Shown piece by piece: positions 8,325 to 43,400 of a stretch of 64,000 nucleotides of DNA. The notes under the pieces were generated by a model that was not told the origin of the DNA, did no database searches, and saw only the letters and a program-made list of their open reading frames with translations. Position 1 is the first letter of the stretch. The number at the start of each line of letters is the position of its first letter. Origin of the DNA: Phyllobates terribilis (Eukaryota); contig NW_027362764.1 in the NCBI RefSeq assembly GCF_046119375.1, forward strand, positions 802,590,001 through 802,654,000, read 5' to 3'. A program made the position numbers and the translations under genes.

Positions 8325-10722
8325 TGAGACAAATAGACGAAGTAGCAAAAAATTACGAGGTGATTATTATGGGGGACTTCAACTACCCCGATATAGACTG
8401 GGAAACCGAAAGCTGTAGATCTCAGAAAGGAAACAGGTTTCTGTCAATTATCAAAGACAATTATTTGTCACAACTTGTGCAGGAACCAACTAGAGGGACG
8501 GCCCTTTTACACTTAATATTAACTAACAGGCCAGACAGAATAACTGAGGTGCAGGTCGGGGGGCACCTGGGAAATAGTGACCCCAACATTATACAATTCC
8601 ACATGTGCTTCAGTAGGTGCCCAGCAAGGGAGTCACAAAAACACTGAACTTCAGCTAAGAGATGCCCTTCACCTTATAGACTGGGATAGTATCTTCAGTA
8701 ATAGGAGCACGGATAAAAAATGGGAAATTTTCAAAACAGTCCTACATAGTCACTGTAGAAGGTACATACCTTATGGGAATAAAAGGGCTAGGAATAGGAG
8801 GAAGCCAATGTGGCTAAATAAGGAAGTCAAGAGGGCAATGAAAAACAAAAAAAGGGCTTTCGGTAAACTTAAACAAGAAGGCAGCGAGGAAGCACTAATA
8901 TCTTATAGGGAAAAAAAACAAAATCTGTAAGAAACAAATAAGAATAGCAAAAGAGGAGACAGAGAGACTAATTGCCAAGGAAAGTAAAACCAATCCCAAA
9001 CTGTTCTTTAACTCTATAAACAGTAAAAGGATTAAAACTGATGGCGTTGGCCCATTGAAAAATAACCTGGGTAAAATCCTAGAGGGCGATGAGGGTAAAG
9101 CAAACCTACTCAATAGCTTCTTCTCCACTGTTTTCACAAAAGAAAACAATTTATCGGAGGAAATGCAGAGTGATAAAGTAAACCCTCCGCTAAATATCAC
9201 CCACCTAACCCAGGAGGAAGTTCAGAAACGCCTAAATAATATCAAAATAGACAAGTCACCAGGCCCAGATGACATACACCCCCAGGTACTAAAAGAATTA
9301 AGTAATGTGATAGACAGACCGCTGTATCTTATATTCAAGCACTCTTTATGGACAGGGACTGTCCCACTAGACTGGCGCCAAGCAAATGTGGTACCAATAT
9401 TCAAAAAGGGGTCTAAAAGTGACCCTGGGAACTATAGAGCAGTCAGCTTAACGTCTATTGTGGGTAAATTGTTTGAAGGATTTCTTAGAGATGCTATTGT
9501 AGAATATCTTAATGATAATAACTGTCTAACTCCATATCAACATGGATTCATGAGGGATCGCTCCTGCCAAACAAACCTGATGGCCTTCTACGAGGAGGTG
9601 AGCTCACAGCTGGACCGGGGAGAGTCAGTGGATGTTGTAGACCTTGACTTCTCCAAAGCGTTTGATACCGTGCCACACAAAAGGTTGGTATATAAAATGA
9701 GAATGCTTGGTCTGGGGGATAATGTGTGCAAGTGGGTAAATAGCTGGCTGAGTGATAGAAAGCAGAGGGTGGTTATCAATGGAGTAAGCTCAGGGGGTGT
9801 CAGGGTTACTAGCGGGGGGCCTCAAGGGTCTGTCTTGGGCCCTATATTATTTAATATATTTATTAATGATCTAGTGGAAGGGTTGCATAGTAAAATAGCA
9901 ATATTTGCAGATGATACTAAACTTTGTAAAGTAGTTAATACAGATGAGGATAGGGCACAGCTACAGAAGGATTTAGATAAATTGGGGAGTTGGGCCAAAA
10001 AATGGCAAATGCGGTTCAATGCCGATAAATGTAAGGTCATGCACATGGGAAAGAAAAACAGCAGTCACCCATACATATTAAATGGGAAACCGTTGGGGAA
10101 ATCTGACATGGAGAAGGACCTGGGCGTCTTGGTTAATAGCAAATTAAATTGGAGTGCCCAGTGTCAGGCAGCAGCTGCGAAGGCAAATAGAGTCATGGTA
10201 TGCATCAGAAGAGGAATAGGGGCATATGATGAGAACATTGTTCTTCCTCTGTATAAAGCGCTGGTAAGGCCGCACTTAGAATATTGTGCACAGTTCTGGG
10301 CTCCGGTGCTCAGGAAAGACATATTGGAGCTAGAGAGGGTACAAAGGAGGGCGACTAAGGTAATAAAGGGAATGGAGGGACTAGAATACCCAGAGAGGTT
10401 GTCAAATTTAGGCCTATTTACATTGGAAAAGAGAAGGCTTAAGGGAGACCTCATAAACATGTATAATTACATCAGGGGGCAGTACAGAGATCTCTCCCAT
10501 GACCTGTTTATACCAAGGATGGTGACAAAGACGAGGGGGCACACTATGCGTCTGGAGGAAAGGAGGTTCCTGCACCAGCATAGAAGGGGATTCTTTACGG
10601 TCAGAGCCGTGAGACTCTGGAACTCTCTGGGAGAGGAAGTGGTGATGTCCAACTCACTTAATGATTTCAAGAGAGGCCTGGACACCTCTCTTGAGAACAA
10701 TAAAATTACATCTTATGCTTAG
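8325..10722 (+). pseudogene. CR1 ORF2, rest of endonuclease plus RT (frameshifted)
   Basis: IIMGDFNYPDIDW, LDFSKAFDTVPH, QGSVLGP, FADD. Split over ORFs 8225, 8577 and 9055; the last is 555 aa and open. Confidence 0.93.
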
Positions 10723-15749: not shown

Positions 15750-18480
15750 CATTTAGGTTGGTTGTGTACCTTTCCACCTGGAAAGTGTTCGGCAGCAGCC
15801 CACCTGGCTGCATCACGGACCCCGGGGTCTGTTGCATTCCATTTAAATAAAGTTGTCTGCAATCGCCCCCCTAACAGTATCTGAGCGCCAGGGTCTTGCC
15901 GAACATGGCCGACAATAAACAACTGCAGCGGTACATACAGCAACTGGAGGCCAGACTTAAATCTCTGGAACAAACTGCTCCGGTCGCTGATATTACTGCA
16001 GTAGCTACTCAGGCGGCTACTCTAGCAGCCAATATTATTAACTCAGCTGTGGTGAATTCTACAACCACTGCAAGTGCCCCATTACCCCATTTTGCTCTCC
16101 TGGAAAAATTTTCTGGAGATAGTAAACTTTGCAGGGGTTTTATTAACGTATGCTCCATTCATTTGGAGATAATGGAGGCACGGTTCCCCTCCGAAAGAGC
16201 CAAAGTGGGTTATATCATTTCATTACTCTCACACAGGGTTCTGGAGTGGGCTACTCTTCTATGGGAGCGGAACGACCCGATTGTAGTAAATGCGGGTCGA
16301 TTCCTTAAGACTCTAAAAAGTGTTTTTCTGGGTCCTCAGGTCACGCATGATACGGCTCTTAAGCTTCTTGCGTTGGTCCAGGGTTCAGCCACCGCCAGCC
16401 ACTATGCCGTCCAGTTCAGAACCCTAGCGGCTGAACTGGATTGGTCTGAGCGGTCGCTTATCCTGGTATTCTGGAGGGGTCTGGCTGGGCATATTAAAGA
16501 TGCTTTATCTACTAGAGAAATCCCAACCTCTCTGGAGGAGTTAATATCTCTTGCTGACCGTATTGACTTGCGTCATGCGGAACACAAGTTAGAGCTGGAG
16601 GTTGCCAGACCTCAGTATCTGTTTGCACCATCCGCCTTTAGACCCATTTTCAAACCCAAGACACTCGACCCGGAGCCTAAGGCTACGGATGTACCCCGGT
16701 CTAAGTCTAGTTCCTCTCGTTCCCGTTCTGCACATATCTCGGAGCTCCCCGTAAATAAGGGTTCCAAGCAGTCGGTAAAACGAGTAGGTCTTACCACCGT
16801 TGGAGGAGGGGTATTAAATTCCGGGACTTCTTCCTCCAAATTATTACATAATGTGACTTTGTCCTTTGATAAAGCTGCAGTCACTGCCAAGGCGTGGGTG
16901 GATTCTGGTGCTGATGGCAATTTTTTATCATCTACGCTTGCCCAGAGGCATGCCATCCCTATTGAGTTACTCTCAAGACCAATGAACATTAGTATTGTCA
17001 ATGGTTCACTCCTGGATGTAGAAATCACCCACCAGTCGATTCCTCTCACCATGTCATTTCCCCAGGGCCACCGGGAGGTTATTTCATTTCTTATTATTCC
17101 CGGTGGATTAGACGAGGTGTTATTGGGGCTCCCCTGGTTACGTTGTCATACTCCACACATTGACTGGAATACGGGGAGAATATCTTCCTGGAGTGAGAAT
17201 TGTGCATCTCAGTGTTTAGTCAAAGTCACCCGGAGGGTAGTCTCTGATCCTCCTATCATTGCGACATCCGGTACAGATTCCTTGTCTGTTTCCAGGACCC
17301 GGGCCTTGTCAGATAATGTCGCAAAGAACTCTCAGGAAGAGAGGGTGGCTGCAGTGTCCTCCAACCCGGTTTGGTCAGGGAGGACGTTTGTTTCCCCTAA
17401 TCTACAGAGTAAGGTGCTCTCCTGGGCTCATGCTCCTAAGACCAGAGCTTACCTGGGGGTCAAACGTACCACTAAGTCCCTTCTACGGTCCTATTGGTGG
17501 CCCCAGTGGTGCCAGGAAGTCAAGGACTTTGTTCTCGCGTGTCCCGTCTGTGCGAGAGATAAATCTTTTCGCCAGAGACCGGCGGGTCCTTTCTCCCTGT
17601 CACCCATGAAGGATCCCACACATAGAGAACCAGTTGTCACTTCTTGCCATCCTGCTTCCCGTCCTAAAAGAGGGTACCCTGTACACCGGAGGGGTCACTG
17701 TTTCATGAATCCTCTCTGTGACCCGTTGGACCACATCACCAATGGCGCGTCGATGAGCAGGGCTTAGTCTTTAAAAGGCCCGCCCACAAACAAGGCGACG
17801 CGCTCAGATCATTTTTGCAAGTGTTGCTGTTGTGTGGACAAGTGTATTCCACGTGCTCCCTAGCTGCTCTCTCCGTGACCTGCCGATGCCAGAGTTCGCT
17901 CGGCTGATTATCACAGGTCACTCAGGCAGGCTTAGATTTGCTTAGGTAGGTAGCTACGTCTTGCAGCCTGGCTCAGCCAAAGGGGTCGCCTAACACCTCG
18001 AGCAGCCTGCAGACGCCCTGTCCACGGCTATCGCCTGTTAGCCACGTGGAGTAGTACCCTTCAGTCCGGTGGCACGCCGGCTGGAGGCTCGTGTACCCGT
18101 CGCGTAGTCACACACGCATCCTAGCGCCAATCCCTACAGCGTAGCGCCTGTATCGAAGACAGGGCTACTGCTTTTCCCCCGGTCGCACGTCTCCCTGCGG
18201 TTCTTGGCACTGAAACCCGCTCCGTGTGCATCAACACGGAGTGGTTCTTCAGTTAAGTAGGAGCTATCCAGGTCACTCTTCTCCCACGCAGTTAACGGAG
18301 ATAGAGCGAACCGCTATACCCGTTCCTGTGTGCTGTAACACGGAAGGGTTTAACATTTAGGTTGGTTGTGTACCTTTCCACCCGGAAAGTGTTCGGCAGC
18401 AGCCCACATGGCCGCATCGCGGACCCCGGGGTCGGTTGCGTTCCATTTAAATAAAGTTGTCTGCAACCGCCCCCCTAACA
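15750..18480 (+). mobile_element. Sushi/chromovirus-like Gypsy element, internally deleted; 5' LTR remnant 15750-15876, 3' LTR ~17699-18480
   Basis: 15750-15876 repeats at ~18355-18480 (AATAAA..CCCCCTAACA). Purine tract GGAGGGG precedes TGTTTCATG at 17699. Confidence 0.8.
15905..17767 (+). CDS. Gag-aspartic protease fused in frame to an integrase zinc-finger remnant (no RT/RNase H)
   Basis: LEKFSGDSKLCRGFI..AKVGYIISLL..EWA (retrotransposon gag), WVDSGADGNF (protease), WAH..LGVKRT..YWWP..CPVC (IN zinc finger). First ATG at 15905. Confidence 0.75.
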   Translation: MADNKQLQRYIQQLEARLKSLEQTAPVADITAVATQAATLAANIINSAVVNSTTTASAPLPHFALLEKFSGDSKLCRGFINVCSIHLEIMEARFPSERAKVGYIISLLSHRVLEWATLLWERNDPIVVNAGRFLKTLKSVFLGPQVTHDTALKLLALVQGSATASHYAVQFRTLAAELDWSERSLILVFWRGLAGHIKDALSTREIPTSLEELISLADRIDLRHAEHKLELEVARPQYLFAPSAFRPIFKPKTLDPEPKATDVPRSKSSSSRSRSAHISELPVNKGSKQSVKRVGLTTVGGGVLNSGTSSSKLLHNVTLSFDKAAVTAKAWVDSGADGNFLSSTLAQRHAIPIELLSRPMNISIVNGSLLDVEITHQSIPLTMSFPQGHREVISFLIIPGGLDEVLLGLPWLRCHTPHIDWNTGRISSWSENCASQCLVKVTRRVVSDPPIIATSGTDSLSVSRTRALSDNVAKNSQEERVAAVSSNPVWSGRTFVSPNLQSKVLSWAHAPKTRAYLGVKRTTKSLLRSYWWPQWCQEVKDFVLACPVCARDKSFRQRPAGPFSLSPMKDPTHREPVVTSCHPASRPKRGYPVHRRGHCFMNPLCDPLDHITNGASMSRA

Positions 18481-19699
18481 CTGATGATCGGATTATCTGA
18501 CGATTGGAGCTTCATACAAAGGCTACGGGCATTGTTTGGTAATGACCGATCACTTCACCAAGTTTTCAGTGGTGATACCTACTAGGGATCAGACGGCAGA
18601 AACCGCAGCCAAGGCCATTTGTCAAGATTTCATTTGGATCTATGGGTGTCCGAAGCGGATACAGTCTGACAAAGGGGCCTGCTTCCAAGTGCGAGTCATG
18701 GATGAGTTATATCACATTTATGGGATCAACAGATCTCAAACAATGCCCTATTACCCCCAGGGAAATGGGGCATGTGAGCGATTCAACCGAACCTTGTTGC
18801 AGATGTTACGGACATTGGAAGAGGACAAGAAAATTAAATGGCCCGAGTTCGTGTCCGAGTTGGTGTGGGTGTATAATAATCGAGTTCATGCGACTACTGG
18901 TTACACACCCTATATGCTGCTGTTTGGAAGGAATGGACGAGAGATTACTGAGCTGGAGCTAGACTCAGAAGATTCAGGTCCGTACAACAGTCCGAGTACC
19001 TGGATTCGAGAACACAGACGGCGGCTTCATACAGTGAGAAAACTGGTTGAGCAGAAATTTCAGGAAATAGAGGATACAGGGCGGCCCCCGATTTCAGTGA
19101 GCCCACTCCAACCAGGAGATCGTGTGTTAGTAAGGGCCAAACCGGTTGGGAGTATGCTAGACCATCATTGGGAAGCGGCACCATATCGAGTGGTGAAGCA
19201 GATCCATCCAAAGTATTCAGTCTACGAGGTTAGGCCTGAAGTGGGTGATGCCACGACATCTAGGGTGTTGCACCGTAATATGCTACGACCCTGTTCGTCC
19301 GAAGCAGAGGACTGTAACAGAATTGAGCCTGCGGAAAAACTAACTGAAGTGCCACACATGGTGACCCTGGAAGACGAAGAAGGATGGGCTACAATGCAAA
19401 TGAGCCCTTCAGTTCCGAGTGAGATACAAAATGGATCAGGAGGCGATTTACAATCTTCACTGCTTGATTTATCAGATACCCCGGAATCACCTTTGCAGGA
19501 GGAACCCCGCAGAACCGAACGGGCTAATGCCGCTATCCCTCCTAACCGATATGCTCAACAGGAGTTTATCTGGTCTCAGATTCAACAGAAAACTGTGCTC
19601 ACCTCTTGTCTGAACTTACGCTGCCTTGAAGGAGGCATCGATCTCGCAAAGAATCCACTCGCCCGGGGACTGGCGATCACAAAGGAGGGAGGAATGTAA
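18481..19699 (+). pseudogene. Gypsy integrase core and C-terminus
   Basis: LVMTDHFTKF, PKRIQSDKG, PQGNGACERFNRTL, YNNRVHATTGYTPY, GPF/Y-type tail. Probably belongs to the host element of 2292 and 10908. Confidence 0.88.
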
Positions 19700-21143: not shown

Positions 21144-22128
21144 GGAGGGAGCAGGAAGGAGAGAGCAGGAAGGAGAGAGCAGGAAGGAGAGAGCAGGAAG
21201 GAGGGAGCAGGAAGGAGAGAGCAGGAAGGAGAGAGCAGGAAGGAGAGGAAGGAGGGAGCAGGAAGGAGGGAGCAGGAAGGAGAGAGCAGGAAGGAGAGAG
21301 CAGGGAGGAGAGAGCAGGGAGGAGAGAGCAGGGAGGAGAGAGCAGGAAGGAGAGAGCAGGAAGGAGAGAGCAGGAAGGAGAGAGGAGGAAGGAGAGAGGA
21401 GGAAGGAGGGAGCAGGAAGGAGGGAGCAGGAAGGAGGGAGCGGGAAGGAGAGAGCGGGAAGGAGAGAGCGGGAAGGAGGGAGCGGGAAGGAGAGAGCAGG
21501 AAGGAGGGAGCAGGAAGGAGAGAGGAGGAAGGAGGGAGCAGGAAGGAGGGAGCAGGAAGGAGAGAGGAGGAAGGAGGGAGCAGGAAGGAGAGAGCGGGAT
21601 GGAGGGAGCAGGAAGGAGAGAGCAGGAAGGAGAGAGGAGGAAGGAGAGAGCAGGAAGGAGGGAGCACGAAGGAGAGAGCAGGAAGGAGGGAGCACGAAGG
21701 AGAGAGCAGGAAGGAGGGAGCAGGAAGGAGAGAGGAGGAAGGAGGGAGCAGGAAGGATAGAGGAGGAAGGAGAGAGCGGGAAGGAGGGAGCGGGAAGGAG
21801 AGAGCGGGAAGGAGAGAGCGGGATGGAGGGAGCAGGAAGGAGAGAGGAGGAAGGAGAGAGCAGGAAGGAGAGAGGAGGAAGGAGAGAGCAGGAAGGAGAG
21901 AGCACGAAGGATACAGCAGGAAGGAGGGAGCAGGAAGGAGAGAGCAGGAAGGAGAGAGGAGGAAGGAGAGAGGAGGAAGGAGGGAGCAGGAAGGAGAGAG
22001 CGGGAAGGAGGGAGCGGGAAGGAAAGAGCAGGGAGGAAGGAGAGAGCAGGGAGGAGGGAGCAGGGAGGAGAGGGCAGGAAGTAGAGGGCAGGATGGAGGG
22101 GGCAGGAAGGAGAGAGCAGGAAGGAGAG
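21144..22128. repeat. 14-bp purine-rich satellite (GGAGAGAGCAGGAA)n, ~70 units
   Basis: Read directly; the plus strand is almost devoid of T. Confidence 0.95.
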
Positions 22129-22707
22129 ATCAGGACGGTCTCCAGTGTCTGCTCACCCTCCATCCCCCACTGCAGCAGCCAGTAATCTGCAGGAGAAGCG
22201 ACAACCTGAGCAGCAGCAGAGGCTGACGGACCCGAGCTGAGATCGCAGGATGGAGCGGACGTCAATATATATTTACACTGGTCCTTTGTATCTCAGCTGC
22301 CGGTGATCGCTCTGAGAACAATGCGCCGATCTCTACATCACACACTTCCATGGTAGTTTCCGGGCTCATTGAACGTTCCCCAGGTGACGATTGTCCTGGT
22401 CAGAACAGATGTCCACGCTGCAGACGATCGCAGTTAGCAGAGCAGGTTGTTCTATACACATTCCTGCTGCTCTGTACAGGGGAGAGGGGGCGGCGCAGAG
22501 TTCCGGGGTCTGCTGCAGTCTGCACTGATATCAGGGGACGTCATGTCGCAGAGCTCTGCGGGGGGAGGGGTCGCTCCATGTGGGATCTATAGAAACCAGT
22601 GCAGCCCGGAGTGTAGAGCGATGATGGGGAGATCTGTACAGCGCCGTGTACGAGACATGGAGACTCAGGGAGCGGAAGTGTGTCATGTGGCCAGGTAGTC
22701 GGTCACT

Positions 22708-23259
<552 letters not shown>

Positions 23260-23288
23260 ATCTGCCCGGGCCCCGAGGACAACACAAA

Positions 23289-24828: not shown

Positions 24829-25230
<402 letters not shown>

Positions 25231-25263
25231 TCTGCTCCTCAGTGCTCTGCACCCGCAACCAAA

Positions 25264-25279
25264 GGCTCTTCTAAGAGCC
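25264..25279 (+). terminator. Histone 3' stem-loop (H2B)
   Basis: GGCTCT-TCTA-AGAGCC; AAGAGCTG begins 16 nt downstream. Confidence 0.95.
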
Positions 25280-25284
25280 ACCAC

Positions 25285-26064
25285 CCCGTCACTTCAAGAG
25301 CTGCTCCTCACCTGCCTCCTGTAGCTCCATGTCCCGTCACTGCAAGAGCTGCTCCTCACCTCCCTCCTGTAGCTCCATGTCCCGTCACTGCAAGAGCTGC
25401 TCCTCACCTGCCTCCTGTAGCTCCATGTCCCGTCACTGCAAGAGCTGCTCCTCACCTCCCTCCTGTAGCTCCATGTCCCGTCACTGCAAGAGCTGCTCCT
25501 CACCTGCCTCCTGTAGCTCCATGTCCCGTCACTACAAGAGCCGCTCCTCACCTTCCTCCTGTAGCTCCATGTCCCGTCACTACAAGAGCTGCTCCTCACC
25601 TGCCTCCTGCAGCTCCATGTTCAGTGACAAGAGCTGCTCCTCACCTGCCTCCTGTAGCTCCATGTCCAGTCACTACAAGAGCTGCTCCATGTCCCGTCAC
25701 TACAAGAGCTACTCCTCACCAGCCTCCTGTAGCTCCATGTCCCGTCACTACAAGAGCTGCTCCTCACCAGCCTCCTGTAGCTCCATGTCCCGTCACTACA
25801 AGAGCTGCTCCTCACCTGCCTCCTGTAGCTCCATGTCCTGTCACTACAAGAGCCTCTCCTCACCTGCCTCCTGTAGCTCCATGTCCCGTCGCTACAAGAG
25901 CTGCTCCTCACCTGCCTCCTGTAGCTCCATGTCCCGTCACTACAAGAGCCGCTCCTCCCCTGCCTCCTGTAGCTCCATGTCCCGTCACTACAAGAGCTGC
26001 TCCTCACCTGCCTCCTGTAGCTCCATGTCCCGTCACTACAAGAGCTGCTCCTCACCTGCCTCCT
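25285..26064 (+). repeat. 48-bp minisatellite containing the H2B HDE, ~16-17 units
   Basis: Unit CCCGTCACTACAAGAGCTGCTCCTCACCTGCCTCCTGTAGCTCCATGT. Confidence 0.95.
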
Positions 26065-26592
26065 GGCGGGTACGATGTGGAGAAGAATAACAGCCGCCTG
26101 AAGTTGGCCGTCAGGTCTCTGGTCACCAAGGGCGCCCTGCTGCAGGTGAAGGGCAGCGGCGCCTCCGGCTCCTTCAAGCTGAACAAGAAGCAGGAGACTA
26201 AGGACAAACCGGCCAAGAAGAAGCCGGCGGCTGCGGCCAAACCCAAGAAACCCGCAGCCAAGAAAGCGGCCAAATCCCCAAAGAAGCTCAAGAAGGCTCC
26301 GACCGCAGCTAAGAAAAGCCCGAAAAAAGCCAAGAAGCCCGCAGCAGCCGCGGCCAAGAAAGCGGCCAAATCCCCAAAGAAGCTCAAGAAGGCTCCGACC
26401 GCGGCCAAGAAAAGCCCGAAAAAGGTCAAGAAGCCCGCAGCAGCCGCAGCCAAGAGCCCCAAGAAGCCGAAGGCCGCTCCGAAGCCCAAGAAGATGACGA
26501 AGAGCACGGCTAAGAAGGCGGCCAAACCCAAAGCTGCCAAGAGTCCAGCTAAGAAGGCGACTAAAGCCAAGAAGCCCGCGGCTAAGAAATAA
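26065..26592 (+). pseudogene. H1: Histone H1 lacking promoter, ATG, N-tail and first part of the globular domain
   Basis: Starts at [27 protein letters not shown], followed by a K/A/P tail with SPKK motifs and a normal stop. Confidence 0.92.
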
Positions 26593-26622
26593 GCCAAAGC
26601 CGTCCTGTTATTACACCACAAA

Positions 26623-26638
26623 GGCTCTTATCAGAGCC
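26623..26638 (+). terminator. Histone 3' stem-loop (H1)
   Basis: GGCTCT-TATC-AGAGCC; AGAGCTGTA begins 16 nt downstream. Confidence 0.95.
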
Positions 26639-26640
26639 AC

Positions 26641-27122
26641 TACCTTGTCCCTGCAGAGCTGTATGATCAGTGCCACCACCTTGTTCCTGCAGAGCTGTAT
26701 GATCAGTGTCATCACCTTCTCCCTGCAGAGCTGTATGATCATTGTCACCGCCTTCTCCCTGCAGAGCTGTATGATCAGTGCCACCACCTTCTCCCCGCAG
26801 AGCTGTATGATCAGTGCCACCACCTTGTCCCTGCAGAGCTGTATGATCAGTGTCACCGCCTTCTCCCTGCAGAGCTGTATGATCAGTGCCACCACCTTGT
26901 CCCTGCAGAGCTGTATGATCAGTGCCATCACCTTGTCCCTGCAGAGCTGTATGACCAGTGTCACCACCTTGTCCCCTCAGAGCTGTATGATCAGTGCCAC
27001 CACCTTGTCTCCGCAGAGCTGTATGATCAGTGCCACCACCTTGTCTCCGCAGAGCTGTATGATCAGTGTCACCACCTTGTCTCCGCAGAGCTGTATGATC
27101 AGTGCCACCACCTTGTCCCTGC
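26641..27122 (+). repeat. 36-bp minisatellite containing the H1 HDE, 13 full units
   Basis: Unit TTGTCCCTGCAGAGCTGTATGATCAGTGCCACCACC. Confidence 0.95.
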
Positions 27123-27418
27123 TGTACAGCGCTGTATCTGCTGTGCAATCTCATATAATCGCCTTCCAGATAACAATGGAATCATTCACATTTGGAGAAA
27201 TAACTAAACCGAATCAATTTCTAAAACAGAAATGAGACCGAAGAATCAGATCTGAGGAGCAAAGGCTGAAATAAAAGTCACTGAGCTTCTATCAGAAATG
27301 AGCAGTACAGTATTAAAAGATCTGATCTGTGAAGAAGCCAGAAGCAGCCGAAGCTTTCTCACAACCTGCTATTTACCCTGTGAGAGACCCGGGCTGTGAA
27401 CAAGACACAGGAGCAGCC

Positions 27419-27512
27419 ACAGCTCTGATGTAGATGGGGTGGTGGCGGGAGCAGAAGCACTGAGGAGCAGATCACTTGGCGCTGCTCATCCTCCACACAA
27501 CCAAAGGCTCTT
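27419..27512 (-). pseudogene. Inverted remnant of an H2B 3' end with its stem-loop deleted
   Basis: Minus strand CAGCGCCAAGTGATCTGCTCCTCAGTGC matches 25218-25246. A plus-strand half stem-loop CAACCAAAGGCTCTT follows. Confidence 0.7.
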
Positions 27513-28017: not shown

Positions 28018-29642
28018 CAGTACAGACCAAAAGTTTGGACACACCTTCTCATTTAAAGATTTTTCTGTATTTTCATGACTTTGAAAATTGTACATTCGCA
28101 CTGAAGGCATCAAAACTATGAATTACCACATGTGGAATTATATACTTAACAAAAAAGTGTGAAACAACTGAAAATATGTCTTATATTCTAGGTTCTTCAC
28201 AGTAGCCACCTTTTGCTTTGATGACTGCTTTGTACACTCTTGGCATTCTCTTGATGAGCTTCAAGAGGTAGTCACCGGAAATGGTCTTCCAACAATCTTG
28301 AAGGAGTTTCCAGAGATGCTTAGCACTTGTTGGCCCTTTTGCCTTCACTCTGCGGTCCAGCTCATCCCAAACCATCTCGATTGGGTTCAGGTCTGGTGAC
28401 TGTGGAGGCCAGGTCACCTGGCGTAGCACCCCATTACTCTCCTTCTTGGTCAAATAGCCCTTACACAGCCTGGAGGTGTGTTTGGGGTTATTGTCCTGTT
28501 GAAAAATAAATGATGGTCCAACTAAACGCAAACCGGATGGAATAGCATGCCGCTGCAAGATGCTGTGGTAGCCATGCTGGTTCAGTATGCCTTCAATTTT
28601 GAATAAATCCCCAACAGTGTAACCAGCAAAGCACCCCCACACCATCACACCTCCTCCTCCATGCTTCACGGTGGGAACCAGGCATGTAGAGTCCATCCGT
28701 TCACCTTTTCTGCGTCGCACAAAGACACGGTGGTTGGAACCAAAGATCTCAAATTTGGACTCATCAGACCAAAGCACAGATTTCCACTGGTCTAATGTCC
28801 ATTCCTTGTGTTCTTTAGCCCAAACAAGTCTCTTCTGCTTGTTGCCTGTCCTTAGCAGTGGTTTCCTAGCAGCTATTTTACCATGAAGGCCTGCTGCACA
28901 AAGTCTCCTCTTAACAGTTGTTGTAGAGATGTGTCTGCTGCTAGAACTCTGTGTGGCATTGACCTGGTCTCTAATCTGAGCTGCTGTTAACCTGTGATTT
29001 CTGAGGCTGGTGACTCGGATAAACTTATCCTCAGAAGCAGAGGTGACTCTTGGTCTTCCTTTACTGGGGCGGTCCTCATGTGAGCCAGTTTCTTTGTAGC
29101 GCTTGATGGTTTTTGCAACTGCACTTGGGGACACATTCAAAGTTTGCCCAATTTTTCGGACTGACCGACCTTCATTTCTTAAAGTAATGATGGCCACTCT
29201 TTTTTCTTTACTTAACTGCTTTTTTCTTGCCATAATACAAATTCTAACAGTCTATTCAGTAGGACTATCAGCTGTGTATCCACCAGACTTCTGCACAACA
29301 CAACTGATGGTCCCAACCCCATTTATAAAGCAAGAAATCCCACTTATTAAACCTGACAGGGCACACCTGTGAAGTGAAAACCATTTCCGGTGACTACCTC
29401 TTGAAGCTCATCAATGCCAAGAGTGTGCAAAGCAGTCATCAAAGCAAAAGGTGGCTACTTTGAAGAACCTAGAATATAAGACATATTTTCAGTTGTTTCA
29501 CACTTTTTTGTTAAGTATATAATTCCACATGTGTTAATTCATAGTTTTGATGCCTTCAGTGTGAATGTACAATTTTCAAAGTCATGAAAATACAGAAAAA
29601 TCTTTAAATGAGAAGGTGTGTCCAAACTTTTGGTCTGTACTG
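28018..29642 (-). mobile_element. Full-length Tc1-superfamily transposon (DD38E)
   Basis: TA flanks on both sides; ~265-bp TIRs (28018-28285 and 29380-29642) starting CAGTACAGACC. Confidence 0.95.
28181..29233 (-). CDS. Tc1-like transposase, intact 350 aa
   Basis: Paired-like HTH, GRPR, WSDES, QQDN..SPDLNPIE with 38 residues between the second D and E. Confidence 0.93.
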   Translation of the reverse strand: MARKKQLSKEKRVAIITLRNEGRSVRKIGQTLNVSPSAVAKTIKRYKETGSHEDRPSKGRPRVTSASEDKFIRVTSLRNHRLTAAQIRDQVNATQSSSSRHISTTTVKRRLCAAGLHGKIAARKPLLRTGNKQKRLVWAKEHKEWTLDQWKSVLWSDESKFEIFGSNHRVFVRRRKGERMDSTCLVPTVKHGGGGVMVWGCFAGYTVGDLFKIEGILNQHGYHSILQRHAIPSGLRLVGPSFIFQQDNNPKHTSRLCKGYLTKKESNGVLRQVTWPPQSPDLNPIEMVWDELDRRVKAKGPTSAKHLWKLLQDCWKTISGDYLLKLIKRMPRVYKAVIKAKGGYCEEPRI

Positions 29643-30009: not shown

Positions 30010-32402
30010 CCATCCCACCTCATGCCTAACCTTACTATAGTCTTCATCTCAACCCTAATCCACCTCTTCAACCTGTCACTAACAACTGGTGTCTTCCCCT
30101 CATGCTTCAAACGTGCCTCAATCACACTTATCCTCAAAAAGCCCTCCCTTGACCCATCATCTCTGACTAGCTATTGCCCCATATCACTTCTCCCATATGC
30201 TTCAAAACTACTGGAACAACTGGACCTGTCAACTGTCTACAACACAGTAGACCATGCCCGCTTAATAGAGACTTGGCCCTATCTTGGATCTTCTCATACC
30301 TAACAGACAGGACATTCAGTGTCTTCCAATCACATACCATAGGGCCCCTTCTCTTCTCCATCTACACCTTTGACCTGAGACACTCTTAGAGTCTCGCGGT
30401 TTTCAGTATCACCTCTATGCTGATGACACACAGATCTACCTCTCTGGACCTGATATCTCCTCCCTACTAACCAAAATCCCACAATGTCTGTCTGCTATTT
30501 TATCCTTCTTCTCTGTGAGATTTCTAAAACTTAACATGGATAAAACTGAATTCATCACCTTTCCACCATCTCACTCAACCACCCCAACAGACCTATCCAT
30601 CAACGACAATGGCTGCTCACTCTCCCCAGACCCATGAGATCGCTGCCTCGGGGTGACCCTGGACTCTGATCTCAAGTTCAAACCACATATCCAAGCCCTT
30701 TCCACTTCCTGCCGACTCCAACTCAAAAATATCTCCCGGATCCGCACATTCCTCAACCACGAATCTGCAAAAACACTAGTGCACGCCCTCATCATCTCCC
30801 GCCTTGACTACTGCAACCTCCTGCTCTGTGGCCTCCCATCCAACACTCTTGCACCCCTCCAATCTATCCTAAACTCTGCTGCTCGACTAATCAACCTGTC
30901 CCCCCGCTATTCCCCGGCCCCTCCTCTCTGTCAATCTCTTCACTGACTCCCCATTGCCCAAAGTCTCCAGCTCAAAATCTTAACCACAGCATACAAAGCC
31001 ATCCACAACCTGTCTCCTCCATACATCTGTGACTTAGTCTCCCGATACTTACCTGCACGCAACCTCCGACCCTCACAAGATCTCCTTCTCTACTCCCCTC
31101 TAATCTCCTCCCACAATTACATACAAGATCTCTCCCGTGCATCCCCCCTCTACCCCAACATATCAGACCCTCACCTACCGTGGAAACCTATAAAAGGAAC
31201 CTGAAGACCCTCCTCTTCCGACAAGCCTACAACCTGCAGTAACCACCGCTCCACCATACCGCTGCACGACCAGCTCTACCCTCACCTACTGTATCCTCAC
31301 CCATCCCTTGTATATTGTGAGCCCTCGCGGGCAGGGTCCTCGCTCCACCATACCGCTGCACGACCAGCTCTACCCTCACCTACTGTATCCTCACCCATCC
31401 CTTGTAGACTGTGAGTCCTCGCGGGCAGGGTCCTCGCTCCACCATACCGCTGCACGACCAGCTCTACCCTCACCTACTGTATCCTCACCCATCCCCTGTA
31501 GACTGTGAGTCCTCGCGGGCAGGGTCCTCGCTCCACCATACCGCTGCACGACCAGCTCTACCCTCACCTACTGTATCCTCACCCATCCCCTGTAGACTGT
31601 GAGTCCTCGCGGGCAGGGTCCTCGCTCCACCATACCGCTGCACGACCAGCTCAGCCCTCACCTACTGTATCCTCACCCATCCCTTGTAGACTGTGAGTCC
31701 TCGCGGGCAGGGTCCTCGCTCCACCATACCGCTGCACAACCAGCTCTACCCTCACCTACTGTATCCTCACCCATCCCTTGTAGACTGTGAGTCCTCGCGG
31801 GCAGGGTCCTCGCTCCACCATACCGCTGCATGACCAGCTCTACCCTCACCTACTGTATCCTCACCCATCCCCTGTAGACTGTGAGTCCTCGCGGGCAGGG
31901 TCCTCGCTCCACTACACCGCTGCACGACCAGCTCTACCCTCACCTACTGTATCCTCACCCATCCCTTGTAGACTGTGAGTCCTCACGGGCAGGGTCCTCG
32001 CTCCACTACACCGCTGCACGACCAGCTCTACCCTCACCTACTGTATCCTCACCCATCCCTTGTAGACTGTGAGTCCTCACGGGCAGGGTCCTCTCTCCAC
32101 CATACCGCTGCACGACCAGCTCTACCCTCACCTACTGTATCCTCACCCATCCCTTGTAGACTGTGAGTCCTCACGGGCAGGGTCCTCGCTCCACCATACC
32201 GCTGCACGACCAGCTGTACCCTCACCTACTGTATCCTCACCCATCCCCTGTAGACTGTGAGCCCTCGCGGGCAGGGTCCTCGCTCCTCCTGGACCAGTCG
32301 CTGACTCGTTTTTGTTCAAGATTATTGTAAATGTTTCTGCTATTTATACCCCCTTTTTTCACATGTAAAGCGCCATGGAATAAATGGCGCTATAATAATA
32401 AA
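30010..32402 (+). mobile_element. L2 LINE, 5'-truncated and decayed
   Basis: RT remnants (HLYADDTQIY, LKNISRIRTFL, SRLDYCN); terminal GTAAAGCGCCATGGAATAAATGGCGCTATAATAATAA. Confidence 0.88.
31250..32290 (+). repeat. 94-bp tandem array from the L2 3' UTR, ~11 units
   Basis: ORF period 94; unit contains TAGACTGTGAG.CCTCGCGGGCAGGG. Confidence 0.93.
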
Positions 32403-33435: not shown

Positions 33436-33750
<315 letters not shown>

Positions 33751-35494: not shown

Positions 35495-37300
35495 AACTAC
35501 CGAGGACCAGCTGACGGTACTGGAACCCGGATGGATAGCAGAAGGTACAAGAGCCAATGGAACTACCGAGGACCAGCTGATGTTACTGGAACTCGGTTAC
35601 TAAGCAGGAGGTACCTGTGCCAGAAAGCACTACCAAGGACCAGCAGACGTTGGTGGAACTTGGATACCGAGAAGGAGGCACCTAATCCAAAGGCACTGCC
35701 GAGAACCAGCTGACGGTACTGGAACCCGGATGGGTAGCAGAAGGTACCCATGTAAAAAAAAAGTTCAAGGCCGCGAGCCGGCCGCAGTTACCAAAACCCA
35801 CAGTCCTACAGAGGGTGCTTGTCCTATTGGCACTATGGAACCAGCCTTCATTGCCAGATCCCGCAGCCCACATAGGAGTCACCTAAACTGCAGGCACCAT
35901 AGAGTCGGCTAACCCGACCGCAACACGACAGGACAACGCATTGGAGGCAAAGTGACGTTGACACTACCCGGAAACAGCTGGCGTGCTGGAACCAGGCTGG
36001 GCAGGAGGGAGTACCCGTGCCAAAGACACTGCCGAGAACCAGCTGACGGTACTGGAACCCGGATGGGTAGCAGAAGATACAAGAGCAAATGGAACTACCG
36101 AGGACCAGCTGACGGTACTGGAACCCGGATGGGTAGCAGAAGGTACAAGAGCCAATGGAACTACCGAGGACCAGCTGATGTTACTGGAACTCGGTTACTA
36201 AGCAGGAGGTACCTGTGCCAGAAAGCACTACCAAGGACCAGCAGACGTTGGTGGAACTTGGATACCGAGAAGGAGGCACCTAATCCAAAGGCACTGCCGA
36301 GAACCAGCTGACGGTACTGGAACCCGGATGGGTAGCAGAAGGTACCCATGTAAAAAAAAAGTTCAAGGCCGCGAGCCGGCCGCAGTTACCAAAACCCACA
36401 GTCCTACAGAGGGTGCTTGTCCTATTGGCACTATGGAACCAGCCTTCATTGCCAGATCCCGCAGCCCACATAGGAGTCACCTAAACTGCAGGCACCATAG
36501 AGTCGGCTAACCCGACCGCAACACGACAGGACAACGCATTGGAGGCAAAGTGACGTTGACACTACCCGGAAACAGCTGGCGTGCTGGAACCAGGCTGGGC
36601 AGGAGGGAGTACCCGTGCCAAAGACACTGCCGAGAACCAGCTGACGGTACTGGAACCCGGATGGGTAGCAGAAGATACAAGAGCAAATGGAACTACCGAG
36701 GACCAGCTGACGGTACTGGAACCCGGATGGGTAGCAGAAGGTACAAGAGCCAATGGAACTACCGAGGACCAGCTGATGTTACTGGAACTCGGTTACTAAG
36801 CAGGAGGTACCTGTGCCAGAAAGCACTACCAAGGACCAGCAGACGTTGGTGGAACTTGGATACCGAGAAGGAGGCACCTAATCCAAAGGCACTGCCGAGA
36901 ACCAGCTGACGGTACTGGAACCCGGATGGGTAGCAGAAGGTACCCATGTAAAAAAAAAGTTCAAGGCCGCGAGCCGGCCGCAGTTACCAAAACCCACAGT
37001 CCTACAGAGGGTGCTTGTCCTATTGGCACTATGGAACCAGCCTTCATTGCCAGATCCCGCAGCCCACATAGGAGTCACCTAAACTGCAGGCACCATAGAG
37101 TCGGCTAACCCGACCGCAACACGACAGGACAACGCATTGGAGGCAAAGTGACGTTGACACTACCCGGAAACAGCTGGCGTGCTGGAACCAGGCTGGGCAG
37201 GAGGGAGTACCCGTGCCAAAGACACTGCCGAGAACCAGCTGACGGTACTGGAACCCGGATGGGTAGCAGAAGGTACAAGAGCCAATGGAACTGCCGAGAA
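35495..37300. repeat. 598-bp tandem repeat, ~3 units with ~60-bp subrepeats
   Basis: Identical ORFs at 35952, 36550 and 37148. Confidence 0.92.
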
Positions 37301-40300
37301 CCAGCTGGCGGTGCTGGAGCCCAGGGTAAATACTAAAAACAGAAGAGCCAGAGGTGTATTTGGAGGAGGTTTTAAATCCGTACTACAGTGGATGTGGACA
37401 AAGCAGGAGAATTTGCCGGACACACAGCTGGGGATCAGCTGACGTTACTGAATCCCAATAACACTGGAGCAAGCGTTGACTGTGCAGACGGCACTTCTGA
37501 GCAGCAACTAGCGGTATTGGAGCCCAGGGTAAATACTAAAAACGGAGGAGCCAGAGGTGTAATTGGAGCAAGTTTTAAATAAGTAGCACAGTGAATATGG
37601 ACAGAGCAGGAGAAATTGCCGTGAACACAGCAGGGGAACAGCTGACGTTACCGAACCCCAATAACACCGCAGCAAGTGTTGACTGTGCAGACGGCACTTC
37701 TGAGCAGCAACTAGCGGTATTGGAGCCCAGGGTAAATACTAAAAACGGAGGAGCCAGAGGTGTAATTGGAGCAAGTTTTAAATAAGTAGCACAGTGAATA
37801 TGGACAGAGCAGGAGAAATTGCCGTGAACACAGCAGGGGAACAGCTGACGTTACCGAACCCCAATAACACCGCAGCAAGTGTTGACTGTGCAGACGGCAC
37901 TTCCGAGCGCCAACTGGCGGTGCTGGAGCCCAGGGATAAGAATGAAAACAGAGGAGCCAGAGGTGTAATTCGAGCAACTTTAAAATCTGTAGTAGTGAGA
38001 ATGTGGACAGAGCAGGAGACATTGCCGTCCGCACAGCAGGGGAACAGCTGACGTTACTGAACCCCAATAACACGGCAGCAAGTGTTGACTGTGCAGACAG
38101 CACTTCCGAGCGCCAACTGGCGGTGTTGGAGCCCAGGGTAAATACTAAAAACGGAGGAGCCAGAGGTGTAATTGGAGCAAGTTTTAAATAAGTAGCACAG
38201 TGAATATGGACAGAGCAGGAGAAATTGCCGTGAACACAGCAGGGGAACAGCTGACGTTACTGAACCCCAATAACATGGTAGCAAGTGTTGACTGTGCAGA
38301 CGGCACTTCCGAGCGCCAACTGGCGGTGCTGGAGCCCAGGGATAAGAATGAAAACAGAGGAGCCAGAGGTGTAATTCGAGCAACTTTAAAATCTGTAGTA
38401 GTGAGAATGTGGACAGAGCAGGAGAAATTGCCGTCCGCACAGCAGGGGAACAGCTGACGTTACTGAACCCCAATAACACGGCAGCAAGTGTTGACTGTGC
38501 AGACACACTTCCGAGCGCCAACTGGCGGTGTTGGAGCCCAGGGTAAATACTAAAAACGGAGGAGCCAGAGGTGTAATTGGAGCAAGTTTTAAATAAGTAG
38601 CACAGTGAATATGGACAGAGCAGGAGAAATTGCCGTGAACACAGCAGGGGAACAGCTGACGTTACTGAACCCCAATAACATGGTAGCAAGTGTTGACTGT
38701 GCAGACGGCACTTCCGAGCGCCAACTGGCGGTGCTGGAGCCCAGGGATAAGAATGAAAACAGAGGAGCCAGAGGTGTAATTCGAGCAACTTTAAAATGTG
38801 TAGTACAGTGGATGTGGACAAAGCAGGAGAAATTGCCGTCCGCACAGCAGGAGAACAGCTGACGTTACTGAACCCCAATAACACGGCAGCAAGTGTTGAC
38901 TGTGCAGACGGCACTTCCGTGCGCCAACTGGCGGTGTTGGAGCTCAGGGATAATACTGAAAACAGAGGAGCCAGAGGTGTAATTGGAGCAACTTTAAAAT
39001 CTGTAGTAGTGAGAATGTGGACAGAGCAGGAGAAATTGCCGTCCGCACAGCAGGGGAACAGCTGACGTTACTGAACCCCAATAACATGGTAGCAAGTGTT
39101 GACTGTGCAGACAGCACTTCCGAGCGCCAACTGGCGGTGCTGGAGCCCAGGGATAAGAATGAAAACAGAGGAGCCAGAGGAGTAATTGGAGCAACTTTAA
39201 AATGTGTAGTACAGTGGATGTGGACAAATCAGGAGAAATTGCCGTCCGCACAGCAGGAGAACAGCTGACGTTACTGAACCCCAATAACACGGCAGCAAGT
39301 GTTGACTGTGCAGACGGCACTTCCGAGCGCCAACTGGCGGTGCTGGAGCCCAGGGATAAGAATGAAAACAGAGGAGCCAGAGGTGTAATTGGAGCAACTT
39401 TAAAATCTGTAGTAGTGAGAATGTGGACAGAGCAGGAGAAATTGCCGTCCGCACAGCAGGGGAACAGCTGACGTTACTGAACCCCAATAACACGGCAGCA
39501 AGTGTTGACTGTGCAGACAGCACTTCCGAGCGCCAACTGGCGGTGTTGGAGCCCAGGGTAAATACTAAAAACGGAGGAGCCAGAGGTGTAATTGGAGCAA
39601 GTTTTAAATAAGTAGCACAGTGAATATGGACAGAGCAGGAGAAATTGCCGTGAACACAGCAGGGGAACAGCTGACGTTACTGAACCCCAATAACATGGTA
39701 GCAAGTGTTGACTGTGCAGACGGCACTTCCGAGCGCCAACTGGCGGTGCTGGAGCCCAGGGATAAGAATGAAAACAGAGGAGCCAGAGGTGTAATTCGAG
39801 CAACTTTAAAATGTGTAGTACAGTGGATGTGGACAAAGCAGGAGAAATTGCCGTCCGCACAGCAGGAGAACAGCTGACGTTACTGAACCCCAATAACACG
39901 GCAGCAAGTGTTGACTGTGCAGACGGCACTTCCGAGCGCCAACTGGCGGTGCTGGAGCCCAGGGATAAGAATGAAAACAGAGGAGCCAGAGGTGTAATTC
40001 GAGCAACTTTAAAATGTGTAGTAGTGAGAATGTGGACAGAGCAGGAGAAATTGCCGTCCGCACAGCAGGGGAACAGCTGACGTTACTGAACCCCAATAAC
40101 ATGGTAGCAAGTGTTGACTGTGCAGACAGCACTTCCGAGCGCCAACTGGCGGTGCTGGAGCCCAGGGATAAGAATGAAAACAGAGGAGCCAGAGGAGTAA
40201 TTGGAGCAACTTTAAAATGTGTAGTACAGTGGATGTGGACAAATCAGGAGAAATTGCCGTCCGCACAGCAGGAGAACAGCTGACGTTACTGAACCCCAAT

Positions 40301-40372
40301 AACACGGCAGCAAGTGTTGACTGTGCAGACGGCACTTCCGAGCGCCAACTGGCGGTGTTGGAGCTCAGGGAT
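37300..40372. repeat. ~203-bp tandem repeat, ~15 units
   Basis: ORF period 203; variant unit types recur in blocks. Confidence 0.93.
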
Positions 40373-40436: not shown

Positions 40437-43400
40437 TTATTCTGGAAGAGGACTGGCAAATTCATGAGAGATCCAGGCCTTGTTCATTTTGAGAAAAGTA
40501 AGCCGGTCAACGTTATCGGAGGATAGTCGCATGCGACGGTCTGTTAGTACACCACCTGCGGCACTAAAGACGCGTTCCGATAATACACTAGCAGCAGGGC
40601 AAGCTAGCACCTCCAGTGCATACTGACTAAGCTCTGGCCATGTATCCAGCTTACAGACCCAAAACTTGAAGGGAGAAGAGCCGTCTGGGAGTACACTAAG
40701 AGGGCAAGACATGTAGTCTGTCACCATCTGACGGAAACGTTGCCTCCTGCTGACTGGAGCTGTCTGTGATGGTGTAGACATTTGTGGCGGCGGGGACACA
40801 AAACTTTGCCACATTTCGGCCATACTGGTCTTGCCTTGTGCTGAGGTGCTGCTTCTGCTCCCTCTTTGTGCAGAGCTTCCTCCACTGCCTCGACGCACTG
40901 AGCTGCTTTGTAAAGCACTAGCAGCACTGCTCTCGGTTGGAATGGAGAACATGATGGAATGCACCAGTGCGTCTTGGTACTCCCGCATTTTACGCTCCCG
41001 GTTCAATGGTGTTATGAGGCTTTGTAAGTTGTCCCGGTAGCGAGGATCTAGGAGGGTGGACACCCAATAATCAGCCGTGTTGAGAATGTGGGCGATGCGG
41101 CGGTCGTTTCTGAGGCACTGCAGCATGAAATCAACCATGTGCTGCAGACTGCCAACTGGCCAAGAAACGCTGTCCCCTGCTTGAGGCGTGATCTCTGCCT
41201 GCTCTGCATCACCCCACCCTCGCTCTAGATACTGACTACTAGAGCATTGTGTACCTCCCTCCTCTGGACAGATGTCTTCCTCATCCATTGACTCCTCCTC
41301 ATCCTCCTCACAAAGTGTCCCCTGCCTAGGCCTTTGTGAGGAACCACGTTGCGCAGACTGTAGAGAAGCAGATGGCATTTGTGACTCCTCATCCTCCACC
41401 TCTTCCAAAACCTCGTCCCTTAGTGCTTGCAGTGTTTTTTCAAGCAGGCAGATAAGGGGGATAGTCATGCTGACTAGTGCATCATCTGCACTCGCCATCC
41501 GCGTGGAATAATCGAAGGCACGCAAAACGTGGCAAATGTCCTTCATAGAGGCCCACTCAGTGGTGGTGAAGTGTGAACGGCGCGCACTGCGACTTGTTTG
41601 CGCCTGCTGCAGCTGGTACTCCATTACTGCTGCCTGCTGCTCACACAACCTCTCCAACATATGTAACGTTGAATTCCACCTGGTGGGTAGGTCACATATG
41701 ATGCGATGTTCCGGAAGACATAATCGGCGCTGCAGAGCTGCAATGTGTGATCTTGCATTGCTGGAACGCCGCAAGTGAGCGCACTCTATGCGGACCTTGT
41801 GAAGCAGTGCATCAAGATCCGGATAGTCCCTCAAAAAACTCTGCACGACCAAGTTGAGCACATGTGCCAGACATGGGATGTGAGTGAGGTTGCCTAGGCC
41901 CAGAGCTGCCACCAGATTTCGGCCATTGTCACACACTACCATGCCTGGCTGGAGATTCGCTGGCACAAACCACACGTCACTCTGCTGCTTGATGGCATTC
42001 CAGAGCTCCTGCGCTGTGTGGCTTCGATTCCCCAAAGAAATTAATTTTAATACGGCCTGTTGACGTTTGGCCACGGCTGTGCTCATATCGGTCATCATAA
42101 CAGGTAACCGTTCACGGGTCGATGTGGAGGTAGACCGTGACGGCTCCTGCAGCGCTGATTCAGAGGAACTGGAGTATGAGGAGGAGTCAATGTGTACAGA
42201 CTGGATTCCTGCAATCCTTGGAGTTGGCAGAACACGTACAGCGCCACTCTCAAGATCTGTACCCGGCTCCACAACATTTACCCAATGGGCAGTGAGGGAA
42301 AGGTATCGTCCCTGTCCATGCTTACTGGTCCACGCATCAGTGGTCAGGTGGACCTTGCTACTGACGGCGTTTTGTAGCGCATGTTTAATTTTTCCCTCCA
42401 CATGATGTTGCAGGGCAGGGACGGCTTGCCTGCTGAAATAAAAGCGGCTGGGCACGTTGTATTGTGGGACTGCCAATGCCATAAAGTTACGGAATGTGTC
42501 AGTCTCCACCAGCCTGAATGATAGCATTTCAAGGGCCAGTAGTTTAGCAATGCCAGCATTCAGAGCCTGTGCTCGGGGGTGGTTTGCCGAGTATGGGCGC
42601 CTTTTCTCCCATGCCTGTGCTAACGATGGCTGTAGACTGGCCTGGGAGTGTGAGGATGACTGGGAAAGTGGTGCTGTGGGTGGAATTACACTGTGTCTCT
42701 GTACAACAGTGCCAGAGATTCTTCCATGGCGATCCTGTGAGGAAGCCGAACCAGCTGTGTGTGAGCTGGAGGAAGAGGCTACAACACGAGCTGAAGAGGT
42801 GGTAGGTGGCGCTGTAGGTTGGCCTAGGTCTTCAGTGTGTTTGTGTAACTCCACCACGTGCTTGGTCCGCACATGTTTCCACATATTTGTGGTATTGAGG
42901 TTGCTGACACTTTTCCCTCTTTTCACCTTCTGATTACACAGCTTGCATTTGACAAAGCAAATGTCATCTGCAACTGTGTCAAAAAAGGACCAGGCACTGC
43001 AAGTCTTGGGAGCGCCCGCTTTGGATTTTGGAAGAGCCATGCTCCTAATGGGTGCCGAAGTGGAGGCTACAGGCAACCAAGTCTGCCCCCTCCCTCTCCC
43101 TCCTTTTTGGGCCGTTCGGGGAATCTCTTCCTCAGAGCTGCTCCCACCACCTTCCTGTCCCTCACGCCATGATGGGTCAAGGACCTCATCATCTACACCA
43201 CCCTCTTCAAACAACTGCTTCTCCTGGGTAGTCTCGACAGCACAGTACGCACCAGAAAGTGGCACCTGAGTCTCATCATCAGATGCGTACTGAGGTGTGC
43301 TGCTGACCATAGGCACTGGCCCACCCGCCTCTTCAGATTCAGAGAGACAAAACGGTTGCGCATCACTGCATACTACCTCTTCTTCAAATTCTCGAATTCT

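Follow-up and report, generated by a model that had tools for sequence, protein, structure and literature searches.

Stephenson, Erba and Gall (1981) and Diaz et al. (1981) reportedly described newt (Notophthalmus) histone clusters that lie in satellite DNA, with read-through transcription on lampbrush loops; the unit of this satellite is reportedly of about 220 bp and unrelated to the processing signal. In amphibian oocytes, the "spheres" at histone loci contain the U7 snRNP, and the satellite DNA of lampbrush chromosomes is read through (PMC12046345; PMC2114352). In histone 3' processing, the U7 snRNP, which is about 500-fold rarer than the spliceosomal snRNPs, is anchored by SLBP bound to the stem-loop (PMC7026596). 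Without SLBP, mammalian extracts process only strong-duplex (16 bp) substrates, and processing in these extracts is severely inhibited when the uninterrupted pairing with U7 is cut to 9-10 bp (PMC7026596). The 5' region common to human and mouse U7 is given in the same paper (PMC7026596).

The window considered here is the whole analysed stretch of 64,000 nucleotides of Phyllobates terribilis DNA (NCBI RefSeq assembly GCF_046119375.1, contig NW_027362764.1, positions 802,590,001 to 802,654,000 of the forward strand), which carries a 36-bp tandem array behind an H1 sequence. This is probably a small array of a poison-frog satellite family that was founded by an H1 3' processing signal and that is functionless and neutral at this site.

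Anatomy of the 36-bp array and of the H1 remnant ahead of it

The histone genes of the window and the elements attached to them are as follows.

22849-23259, plus strand: H3 gene, with its stem-loop at 23284.
24838-25230, plus strand: H2B gene, with an N-masked middle (24951-25087) and its stem-loop at 25259-25303.
25285-26065, plus strand: 48-bp array from the H2B downstream element (TRF, H2B stem-loop, variability table).
26065-26592, plus strand: H1 remnant, consisting of the late globular domain, the lysine-rich tail and a TAA stop (Pfam, alignment).
26623-26638, plus strand: sole complete histone stem-loop of the H1 locus, with a 6-bp stem GGCTCT/AGAGCC and a 4-nt loop TATC (Rfam, MFE fold).
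26630-27122, plus strand: 36-bp tandem array of 13 full units (26630-27097) and a 25-nt partial unit (TRF, register and per-position tables, motif hits).
26655-26663, plus strand: first, genuine HDE AGAGCTGTA (sequence, U7 duplex).
27123-27150, plus strand: putative decayed end of the array, with a TGTA insertion followed by a diverged HDE and unit start CAGCGCTGTATCTGCTGTG, 14/19 matching (read from the sequence).
33436-33750, minus strand: H4 gene, with its stem-loop at 33408-33363.

No H2A ORF of at least 90 aa was found in the whole window.

The anatomy of the 36-bp array can be read directly. TRF gave a period of 36, 13.7 copies, 92% matches and 0% indels, so the units are of constant length and stand head to tail, as in a tandem satellite. 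The earlier note on this DNA had let the repeat start right after the stem, at 26639; the periodicity actually starts in the hairpin loop, at 26630, and the unit therefore includes the 3' stem arm, unit 1 being the H1 gene's own processing signal (ACTACC, AGAGCC). The hairpin at 26623-26638 is present in the MFE fold, and Rfam RF00032 matched positions 26618-26664 with 31.9 bits (E = 5.8e-06), slightly below the gathering score of 34. The first HDE begins 16 nt past the stem, that is, 11 nt past the expected cleavage site. As had been proposed, the unit spans a cleavage-like site and the HDE: in the register table, the 3' stem arm leads to a cleavage-like ACCACC, and a spacer separates this from the HDE. 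The distance of 11 nt from the cleavage-like ACCAC to the HDE is the same in every unit. The 17-mer CAGAGCTGTATGATCAG, which holds the HDE, occurs 13 times in the window, always within the array, with 0 occurrences expected from shuffles.

Units 2-13 differ from unit 1 in carrying AGTGCC for AGAGCC, which breaks the stem pairing, and ACCACC for ACTACC, and the 5' stem arm is absent from all of them. The two differences common to units 2-13 show that these units come from one altered founder, and not from repeated copying of unit 1. In total, the H1 locus contains 13 HDEs but one stem-loop, the 16-nt stem-loop feature being present at unit 1 alone. The 36-bp unit is distinct from the H2B unit, as the earlier note had it, with only the AGAGCTG core common to both, and the two arrays are therefore independent amplifications; TRF, the register table and the 13 motif hits agree with the proposed independent amplification of the H1 downstream element into 13 copies.

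Two further candidates were rejected. A structured RNA or hairpin encoded by the 36-bp array was discarded on folding z-scores of +0.29 and -0.79 for the two strands. A three-unit higher-order repeat was weakly hinted at by mean differences of 2.56 at lag 3 versus 2.7-3.7 at other lags, with T at unit position 8 recurring in units 4, 7, 10 and 13, and was not retained.

The 9-nt U7-complementary AGAGCTGTA is identical in all 13 full units, exactly as had been noticed before. In silico, the duplex of each unit with the 5' region of human/mouse U7 has 9 contiguous pairs and an energy of -14.0 kcal/mol, the U7 used being mammalian and not that of the frog. The genuine H2B, H3 and H4 HDEs of the window gave duplexes of -14.1, -12.4 and -14.3 kcal/mol with mammalian U7, so the pairing of the units falls among those of the genuine cluster HDEs (range -12.4 to -14.3 kcal/mol), and the combination of U7 pairing and spacing that characterizes the histone signal was found in silico in all 13 units. 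Having no stem-loop and only 9 bp of pairing, a unit would, by the mammalian standard, be a poor processing substrate.

The truncation of the H1 gene ahead of the array is likewise a direct observation. Pfam Linker_histone matched the remnant only at profile positions 38-74 of 74, and the remnant aligns with residues 70-215 of the 215-residue Phyllobates terribilis H1 (P0001); it has neither a promoter nor the first 69 codons, and its sequence starts in the middle of the globular domain at 26065, exactly where the H2B 48-bp array ends. The best protein matches are H1 of dendrobatid and related frogs, with identities of 134-136/143-146 residues in full-length alignment to the proteins of Phyllobates terribilis, Ranitomeya variabilis, R. 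imitator and Anomaloglossus. The tail contains a 96-bp x2.1 tandem duplication (26252-26455, 94% matches by TRF), which amounts to approximately 29-32 extra residues compared to the dendrobatid H1 proteins. At this duplication, 84 nt are skipped in one paralogue RNA contig.

Contigs from four runs (independent DNA, same-species RNA and two other-organism labels) depart from the window at 26068-26071, and beyond this point they encode ALKKALSAGG, the missing part of the globular domain. Intact H1 paralogues therefore exist, and it is these that the RNA shows. Expression of the remnant itself was rejected as unsupported: no mismatch-free RNA contig was found, and the long RNA contigs run on into intact-paralogue sequence. 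So, the gene ahead of the 36-bp array is a dead, promoterless remnant, and the intact, expressed histone gene that a working signal requires ahead of it is lacking here. The description of the array as following an H1 gene holds for the stem-loop and the H1 match, but what is present is only the 3' part of the gene, from 26065 onward. The absence of the array from functional H1 genes, which the earlier note had named as the finding that would speak against its proposal, is nearly reached at this locus, the gene being a promoterless remnant.

Around the histone genes there are a reverse-transcriptase ORF of 555 aa (9055-10722, plus strand), gag/integrase-like ORFs of an LTR-type element (15896-19699, plus strand) and a Tc1/mariner-like transposase ORF of 350 aa (28181-29233, minus strand). 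The window also contains a hAT-transposase-type ORF of 1,130 aa (40437-43829, minus strand), which has a near-identical partial copy at 176-1294 and a diverged copy at 57199-59054 (both minus strand), and a 203-bp x15 array (37290-40372) adjoins the long copy. Two more arrays lie near H3 and H4: one of 14 bp x71 (21144-22135), some 700 bp upstream of H3, and one of 94 bp x11 with 97% matches (31247-32286), some 1 kb downstream of H4.

Uneven variation across the units

The per-position table of the 13 units contains 12 variable sites, all at unit positions 2-24, and positions 25-36 together with position 1 form a 13-nt invariant run. For the 9-mer, the probability of containing none of the 12 variable sites is 0.014 with uniform sites and 0.025 when the sites are drawn within base classes, and an invariant run of at least 13 nt has a probability of about 0.02 (0.021). 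Variable sites 13 (A/G) and 23 (T/C) correspond to CpG versus CpA/TpG pairs; CpG sites are expected mutation hotspots in methylated vertebrate repeats, owing to CpG decay. The same statistic applied to five other arrays of the window gave P = 0.10-0.62, beside which the H1 array is only modestly exceptional.

The H2B array had been put forward as parallel support for constraint, and this support fell away. In the variability table, 5 of its 19 variant cells lie within its own HDE, compared to approximately 3 expected. Of 14 clean units, 5 have a changed HDE-like AAGAGCTG, which ends in ..CCG in three of them, in ..CTA in one and in ..CCT in another. The H2B array gives its own HDE no protection.

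At the level of the whole family, the abundant variants seen in contigs have single bases inserted after unit positions 19-24 and loose ends that read CGGCAGAGCTGTAT, and the HDE is intact in them, those of the organism B run included. A neutral course could produce such a picture. The apparent conservation of the HDE may be due partly to chance and partly to CpG-decay hotspots elsewhere in the unit, and the units may exchange with copies beside working H1 genes, where the first HDE would be under real selection and the spacer free.

Because the CpG sites, the other arrays, the H2B array and this neutral exchange route all weaken the signal, constraint on the HDE is unproven: 12 sites give a hint of it, with a significance of roughly 2%. 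The uneven variation reported in the earlier note was thus present, all variable sites lying outside the HDE, but the constraint read from it is unsupported by P values of 0.014-0.025 that come from 12 sites, two of them CpG.

A selective reading of the same data is that of a fail-safe array, in which polymerases that miss the first cleavage site would meet further U7 sites with cleavage-like sites, and cleavage at any unit would lead to 5'-3' degradation and prevent read-through into the next same-strand gene. ACCACC and a correct spacing of 11 nt are indeed kept in every unit, and the U7 complement matches the genuine cluster HDEs in strength, but no repeated unit has a stem-loop, and a pairing of 9 bp belongs to those that are poorly processed without the help of SLBP. 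The invariance of the HDE, with P about 0.02, would suit a fail-safe array; the HDE of the H2B array, which is free to mutate, speaks against one. The same-strand H2B and H1 both bear arrays and the H3 and H4 of the window do not, which would also suit this reading; however, the H1 in question is a dead remnant, and the thousands of copies indicated by sequencing depth are far beyond the need of a terminator. Fail-safe termination is, in view of this evidence, quite unlikely.

Abundance in the genome and signal in RNA libraries

The abundance of the unit across the genome was observed directly in DNA run X5, whose sample and study are independent of the best-matching runs. Word depth in X5 was 13,000-92,000 in the array bins, 19-25 in the unique flank (27163-27315) and 75-330 in the H1 coding sequence. 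Words of the 36-bp unit were about 1,000-4,800 times deeper than the single-copy flank, and these depth ratios indicate thousands of copies of the commonest unit variants; with a depth of up to 92,000 against approximately 20, the unit has the abundance of a high-copy, multi-locus satellite. Words of the H2B 48-bp array reached a depth of about 1,860 in X5, roughly 100 times single copy, so the H2B array is likewise multi-locus. Downstream of the 36-bp array, the short repeat at 27367-27468 had a depth of 830-1,250 in DNA and occurred in RNA libraries, too. In three runs, its contigs have an inverted joint (27438/27404) whose two sides are separated by AGAG, and the repeat probably belongs to a small foldback or to a transposon end.

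The 66-mers of the array were also found, with 2-6 mismatches, in runs labelled organism B and organism D, so that the family may predate one species. A comparison of the array ORF with the protein collection, made for taxonomic spread, gave no hits, and the invariant 20-mer had no exact occurrence in the metagenome contigs scanned.

One rival explanation is that repeat-rich reads were mis-assembled, which would affect the array itself, the number of its copies or the point at which the H2B array joins the H1 remnant. Among the contigs listed, none spans the 26065 junction or the entire array, and X5 depth is zero at 26704-26754. A gap between contigs is, however, no proof, long reads easily span an array of 0.5 kb, and words of both the unit and the junction are deep in independent DNA samples and in other-organism runs, which makes an assembly artefact extremely improbable.

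In the RNA libraries, the array 66-mers had a depth of 2-20 (X9) and 65-93 (X19). The RNA-to-DNA depth ratio was 4e-5 to 4.5e-4 for the array, 2.3e-2 for the repeat at 27418-27468 and 0.31 for the H1 coding sequence, and a carry-over of genomic DNA at approximately 0.005x coverage would be enough to account for the array signal. Per copy, the array is very weakly represented in RNA, and its transcription is putative.

This result bears on a second selective reading, in which the satellite would be a platform or a sponge for the U7 snRNP. Its transcripts, arising by read-through (on the lampbrush chromosomes of oocytes, for instance), would bind many U7 snRNPs and either help to bring U7 together at the histone locus body or titrate it. 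The thousands of genomic U7-complementary sites, clustered at histone loci, the U7-containing oocyte spheres and lampbrush read-through of satellites (PMC12046345, PMC2114352) and the scarcity of U7 (PMC7026596) are all consistent with such a role, and array words do occur in the RNA libraries of two organisms; given the copy number, however, the carry-over of DNA would account for their depth, and the unit contains neither a structure nor an extra motif. A platform or sponge is considered very improbable.

Taken jointly, the selective alternatives of fail-safe termination and a U7 platform are unlikely. It is distinctly doubtful that, more broadly, the satellite derived from H1 has a role in histone expression in poison frogs, through backup cleavage and termination or the gathering of U7, with the HDE selected across arrays and species. 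The earlier note had regarded this array as a candidate for an undescribed system, and a working system is not supported: the repeated units have no stem-loop, a promoterless remnant stands ahead of them, and the unit is a genome-wide satellite. For testing function, no member of the family is less informative than this array, because it lies behind a dead gene copy.

Proposed origin and comparison with known systems

Tandem arrays make up 21.5% of the window (32 arrays, 13 of them of at least 300 bp). Arrays start directly at two of the four histone stem-loops, those of H2B and H1, for which the chance probability is about 2e-4; the H3 and H4 stem-loops in the window are without such arrays. 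In the H2B array, of approximately 16 copies, the repeats begin directly at the H2B cleavage site. There is, then, some link between histone 3' ends and the birth of arrays. The preferred reading, which we infer, is that histone 3' ends are a mutational hotspot for tandem duplication; arrays at two of four stem-loops would fit selection, too.

A separate observation concerns Logan contig L001 (SRR15600130), which carries at 2114-2760 an H1 gene with an ordinary single stem-loop and has no tandem repeat in its 3.7 kb. Its use as an outgroup lacking the array is a weak argument. A contig of Pristimantis breaks off within the H1 gene.

Under the preferred neutral origin, the founder unit would have extended from the hairpin loop through the cleavage site to the U7-binding HDE of an H1 gene. 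The first duplication may have occurred by replication slippage or template switching at the hairpin; this is favoured by a unit boundary within the hairpin loop and by short ATCAG/ATCTG-like repeats on both sides of the founder unit. The birth of the array could have been promoted by a perfect DNA hairpin within a gene whose transcription in S phase is heavy. Unequal crossing-over and gene conversion would then have led to its expansion and to its spread behind H1 genes and into large blocks. Both the slippage mechanism and the neutrality of the array are what we infer, whereas its anatomy, the truncation, the abundance and the unit words in other-organism runs were observed.

If the neutral reading is true, this family represents a clean, datable birth of satellite DNA, in which a 36-bp RNA-processing signal beside a hairpin grew to thousands of copies, and histone 3' ends are suggested as hotspots of tandem duplication. 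If the functional reading were true, this would be the first genome known to multiply U7 snRNP binding sites, and a natural system for the study of how scarce U7 is concentrated at histone loci and how transcription ends behind histone genes. A search of the literature for HDE-derived satellites and for histone-linked satellites in dendrobatids found no description, and the satellite family, which is of unusual origin, is apparently undescribed.

Compared with the histone 3' processing signal, unit 1 is alike in all of its parts, having the 6-bp stem, the 4-nt loop, ACTACC, the 11-nt spacer and a purine-started HDE, and in the later units the cleavage-like site, its distance from the HDE and the HDE itself are preserved. 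Unlike such a signal, units 2-13 have no SLBP site, the element is repeated 13 times, and the H1 upstream is truncated. The array derives from a histone 3' signal yet fails as a working one, since it has no stem-loops in its repeated units and no intact gene ahead of it.

At the same time, the array fits the definition of a minisatellite or satellite. With minisatellite and satellite families that arose from genic segments it shares the head-to-tail units, the many loci and the thousands of copies, as well as variants common to neighbouring units and one decayed array end. It is unlike them in that its founder is an RNA-processing signal and each monomer is a potential snRNP-binding site.

The newt clusters resemble this locus in that amphibian histone genes are flanked downstream by a satellite that transcription would reach if 3' processing failed. 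The difference is that the satellite of the frog is the processing signal itself and that read-through into it is putative.
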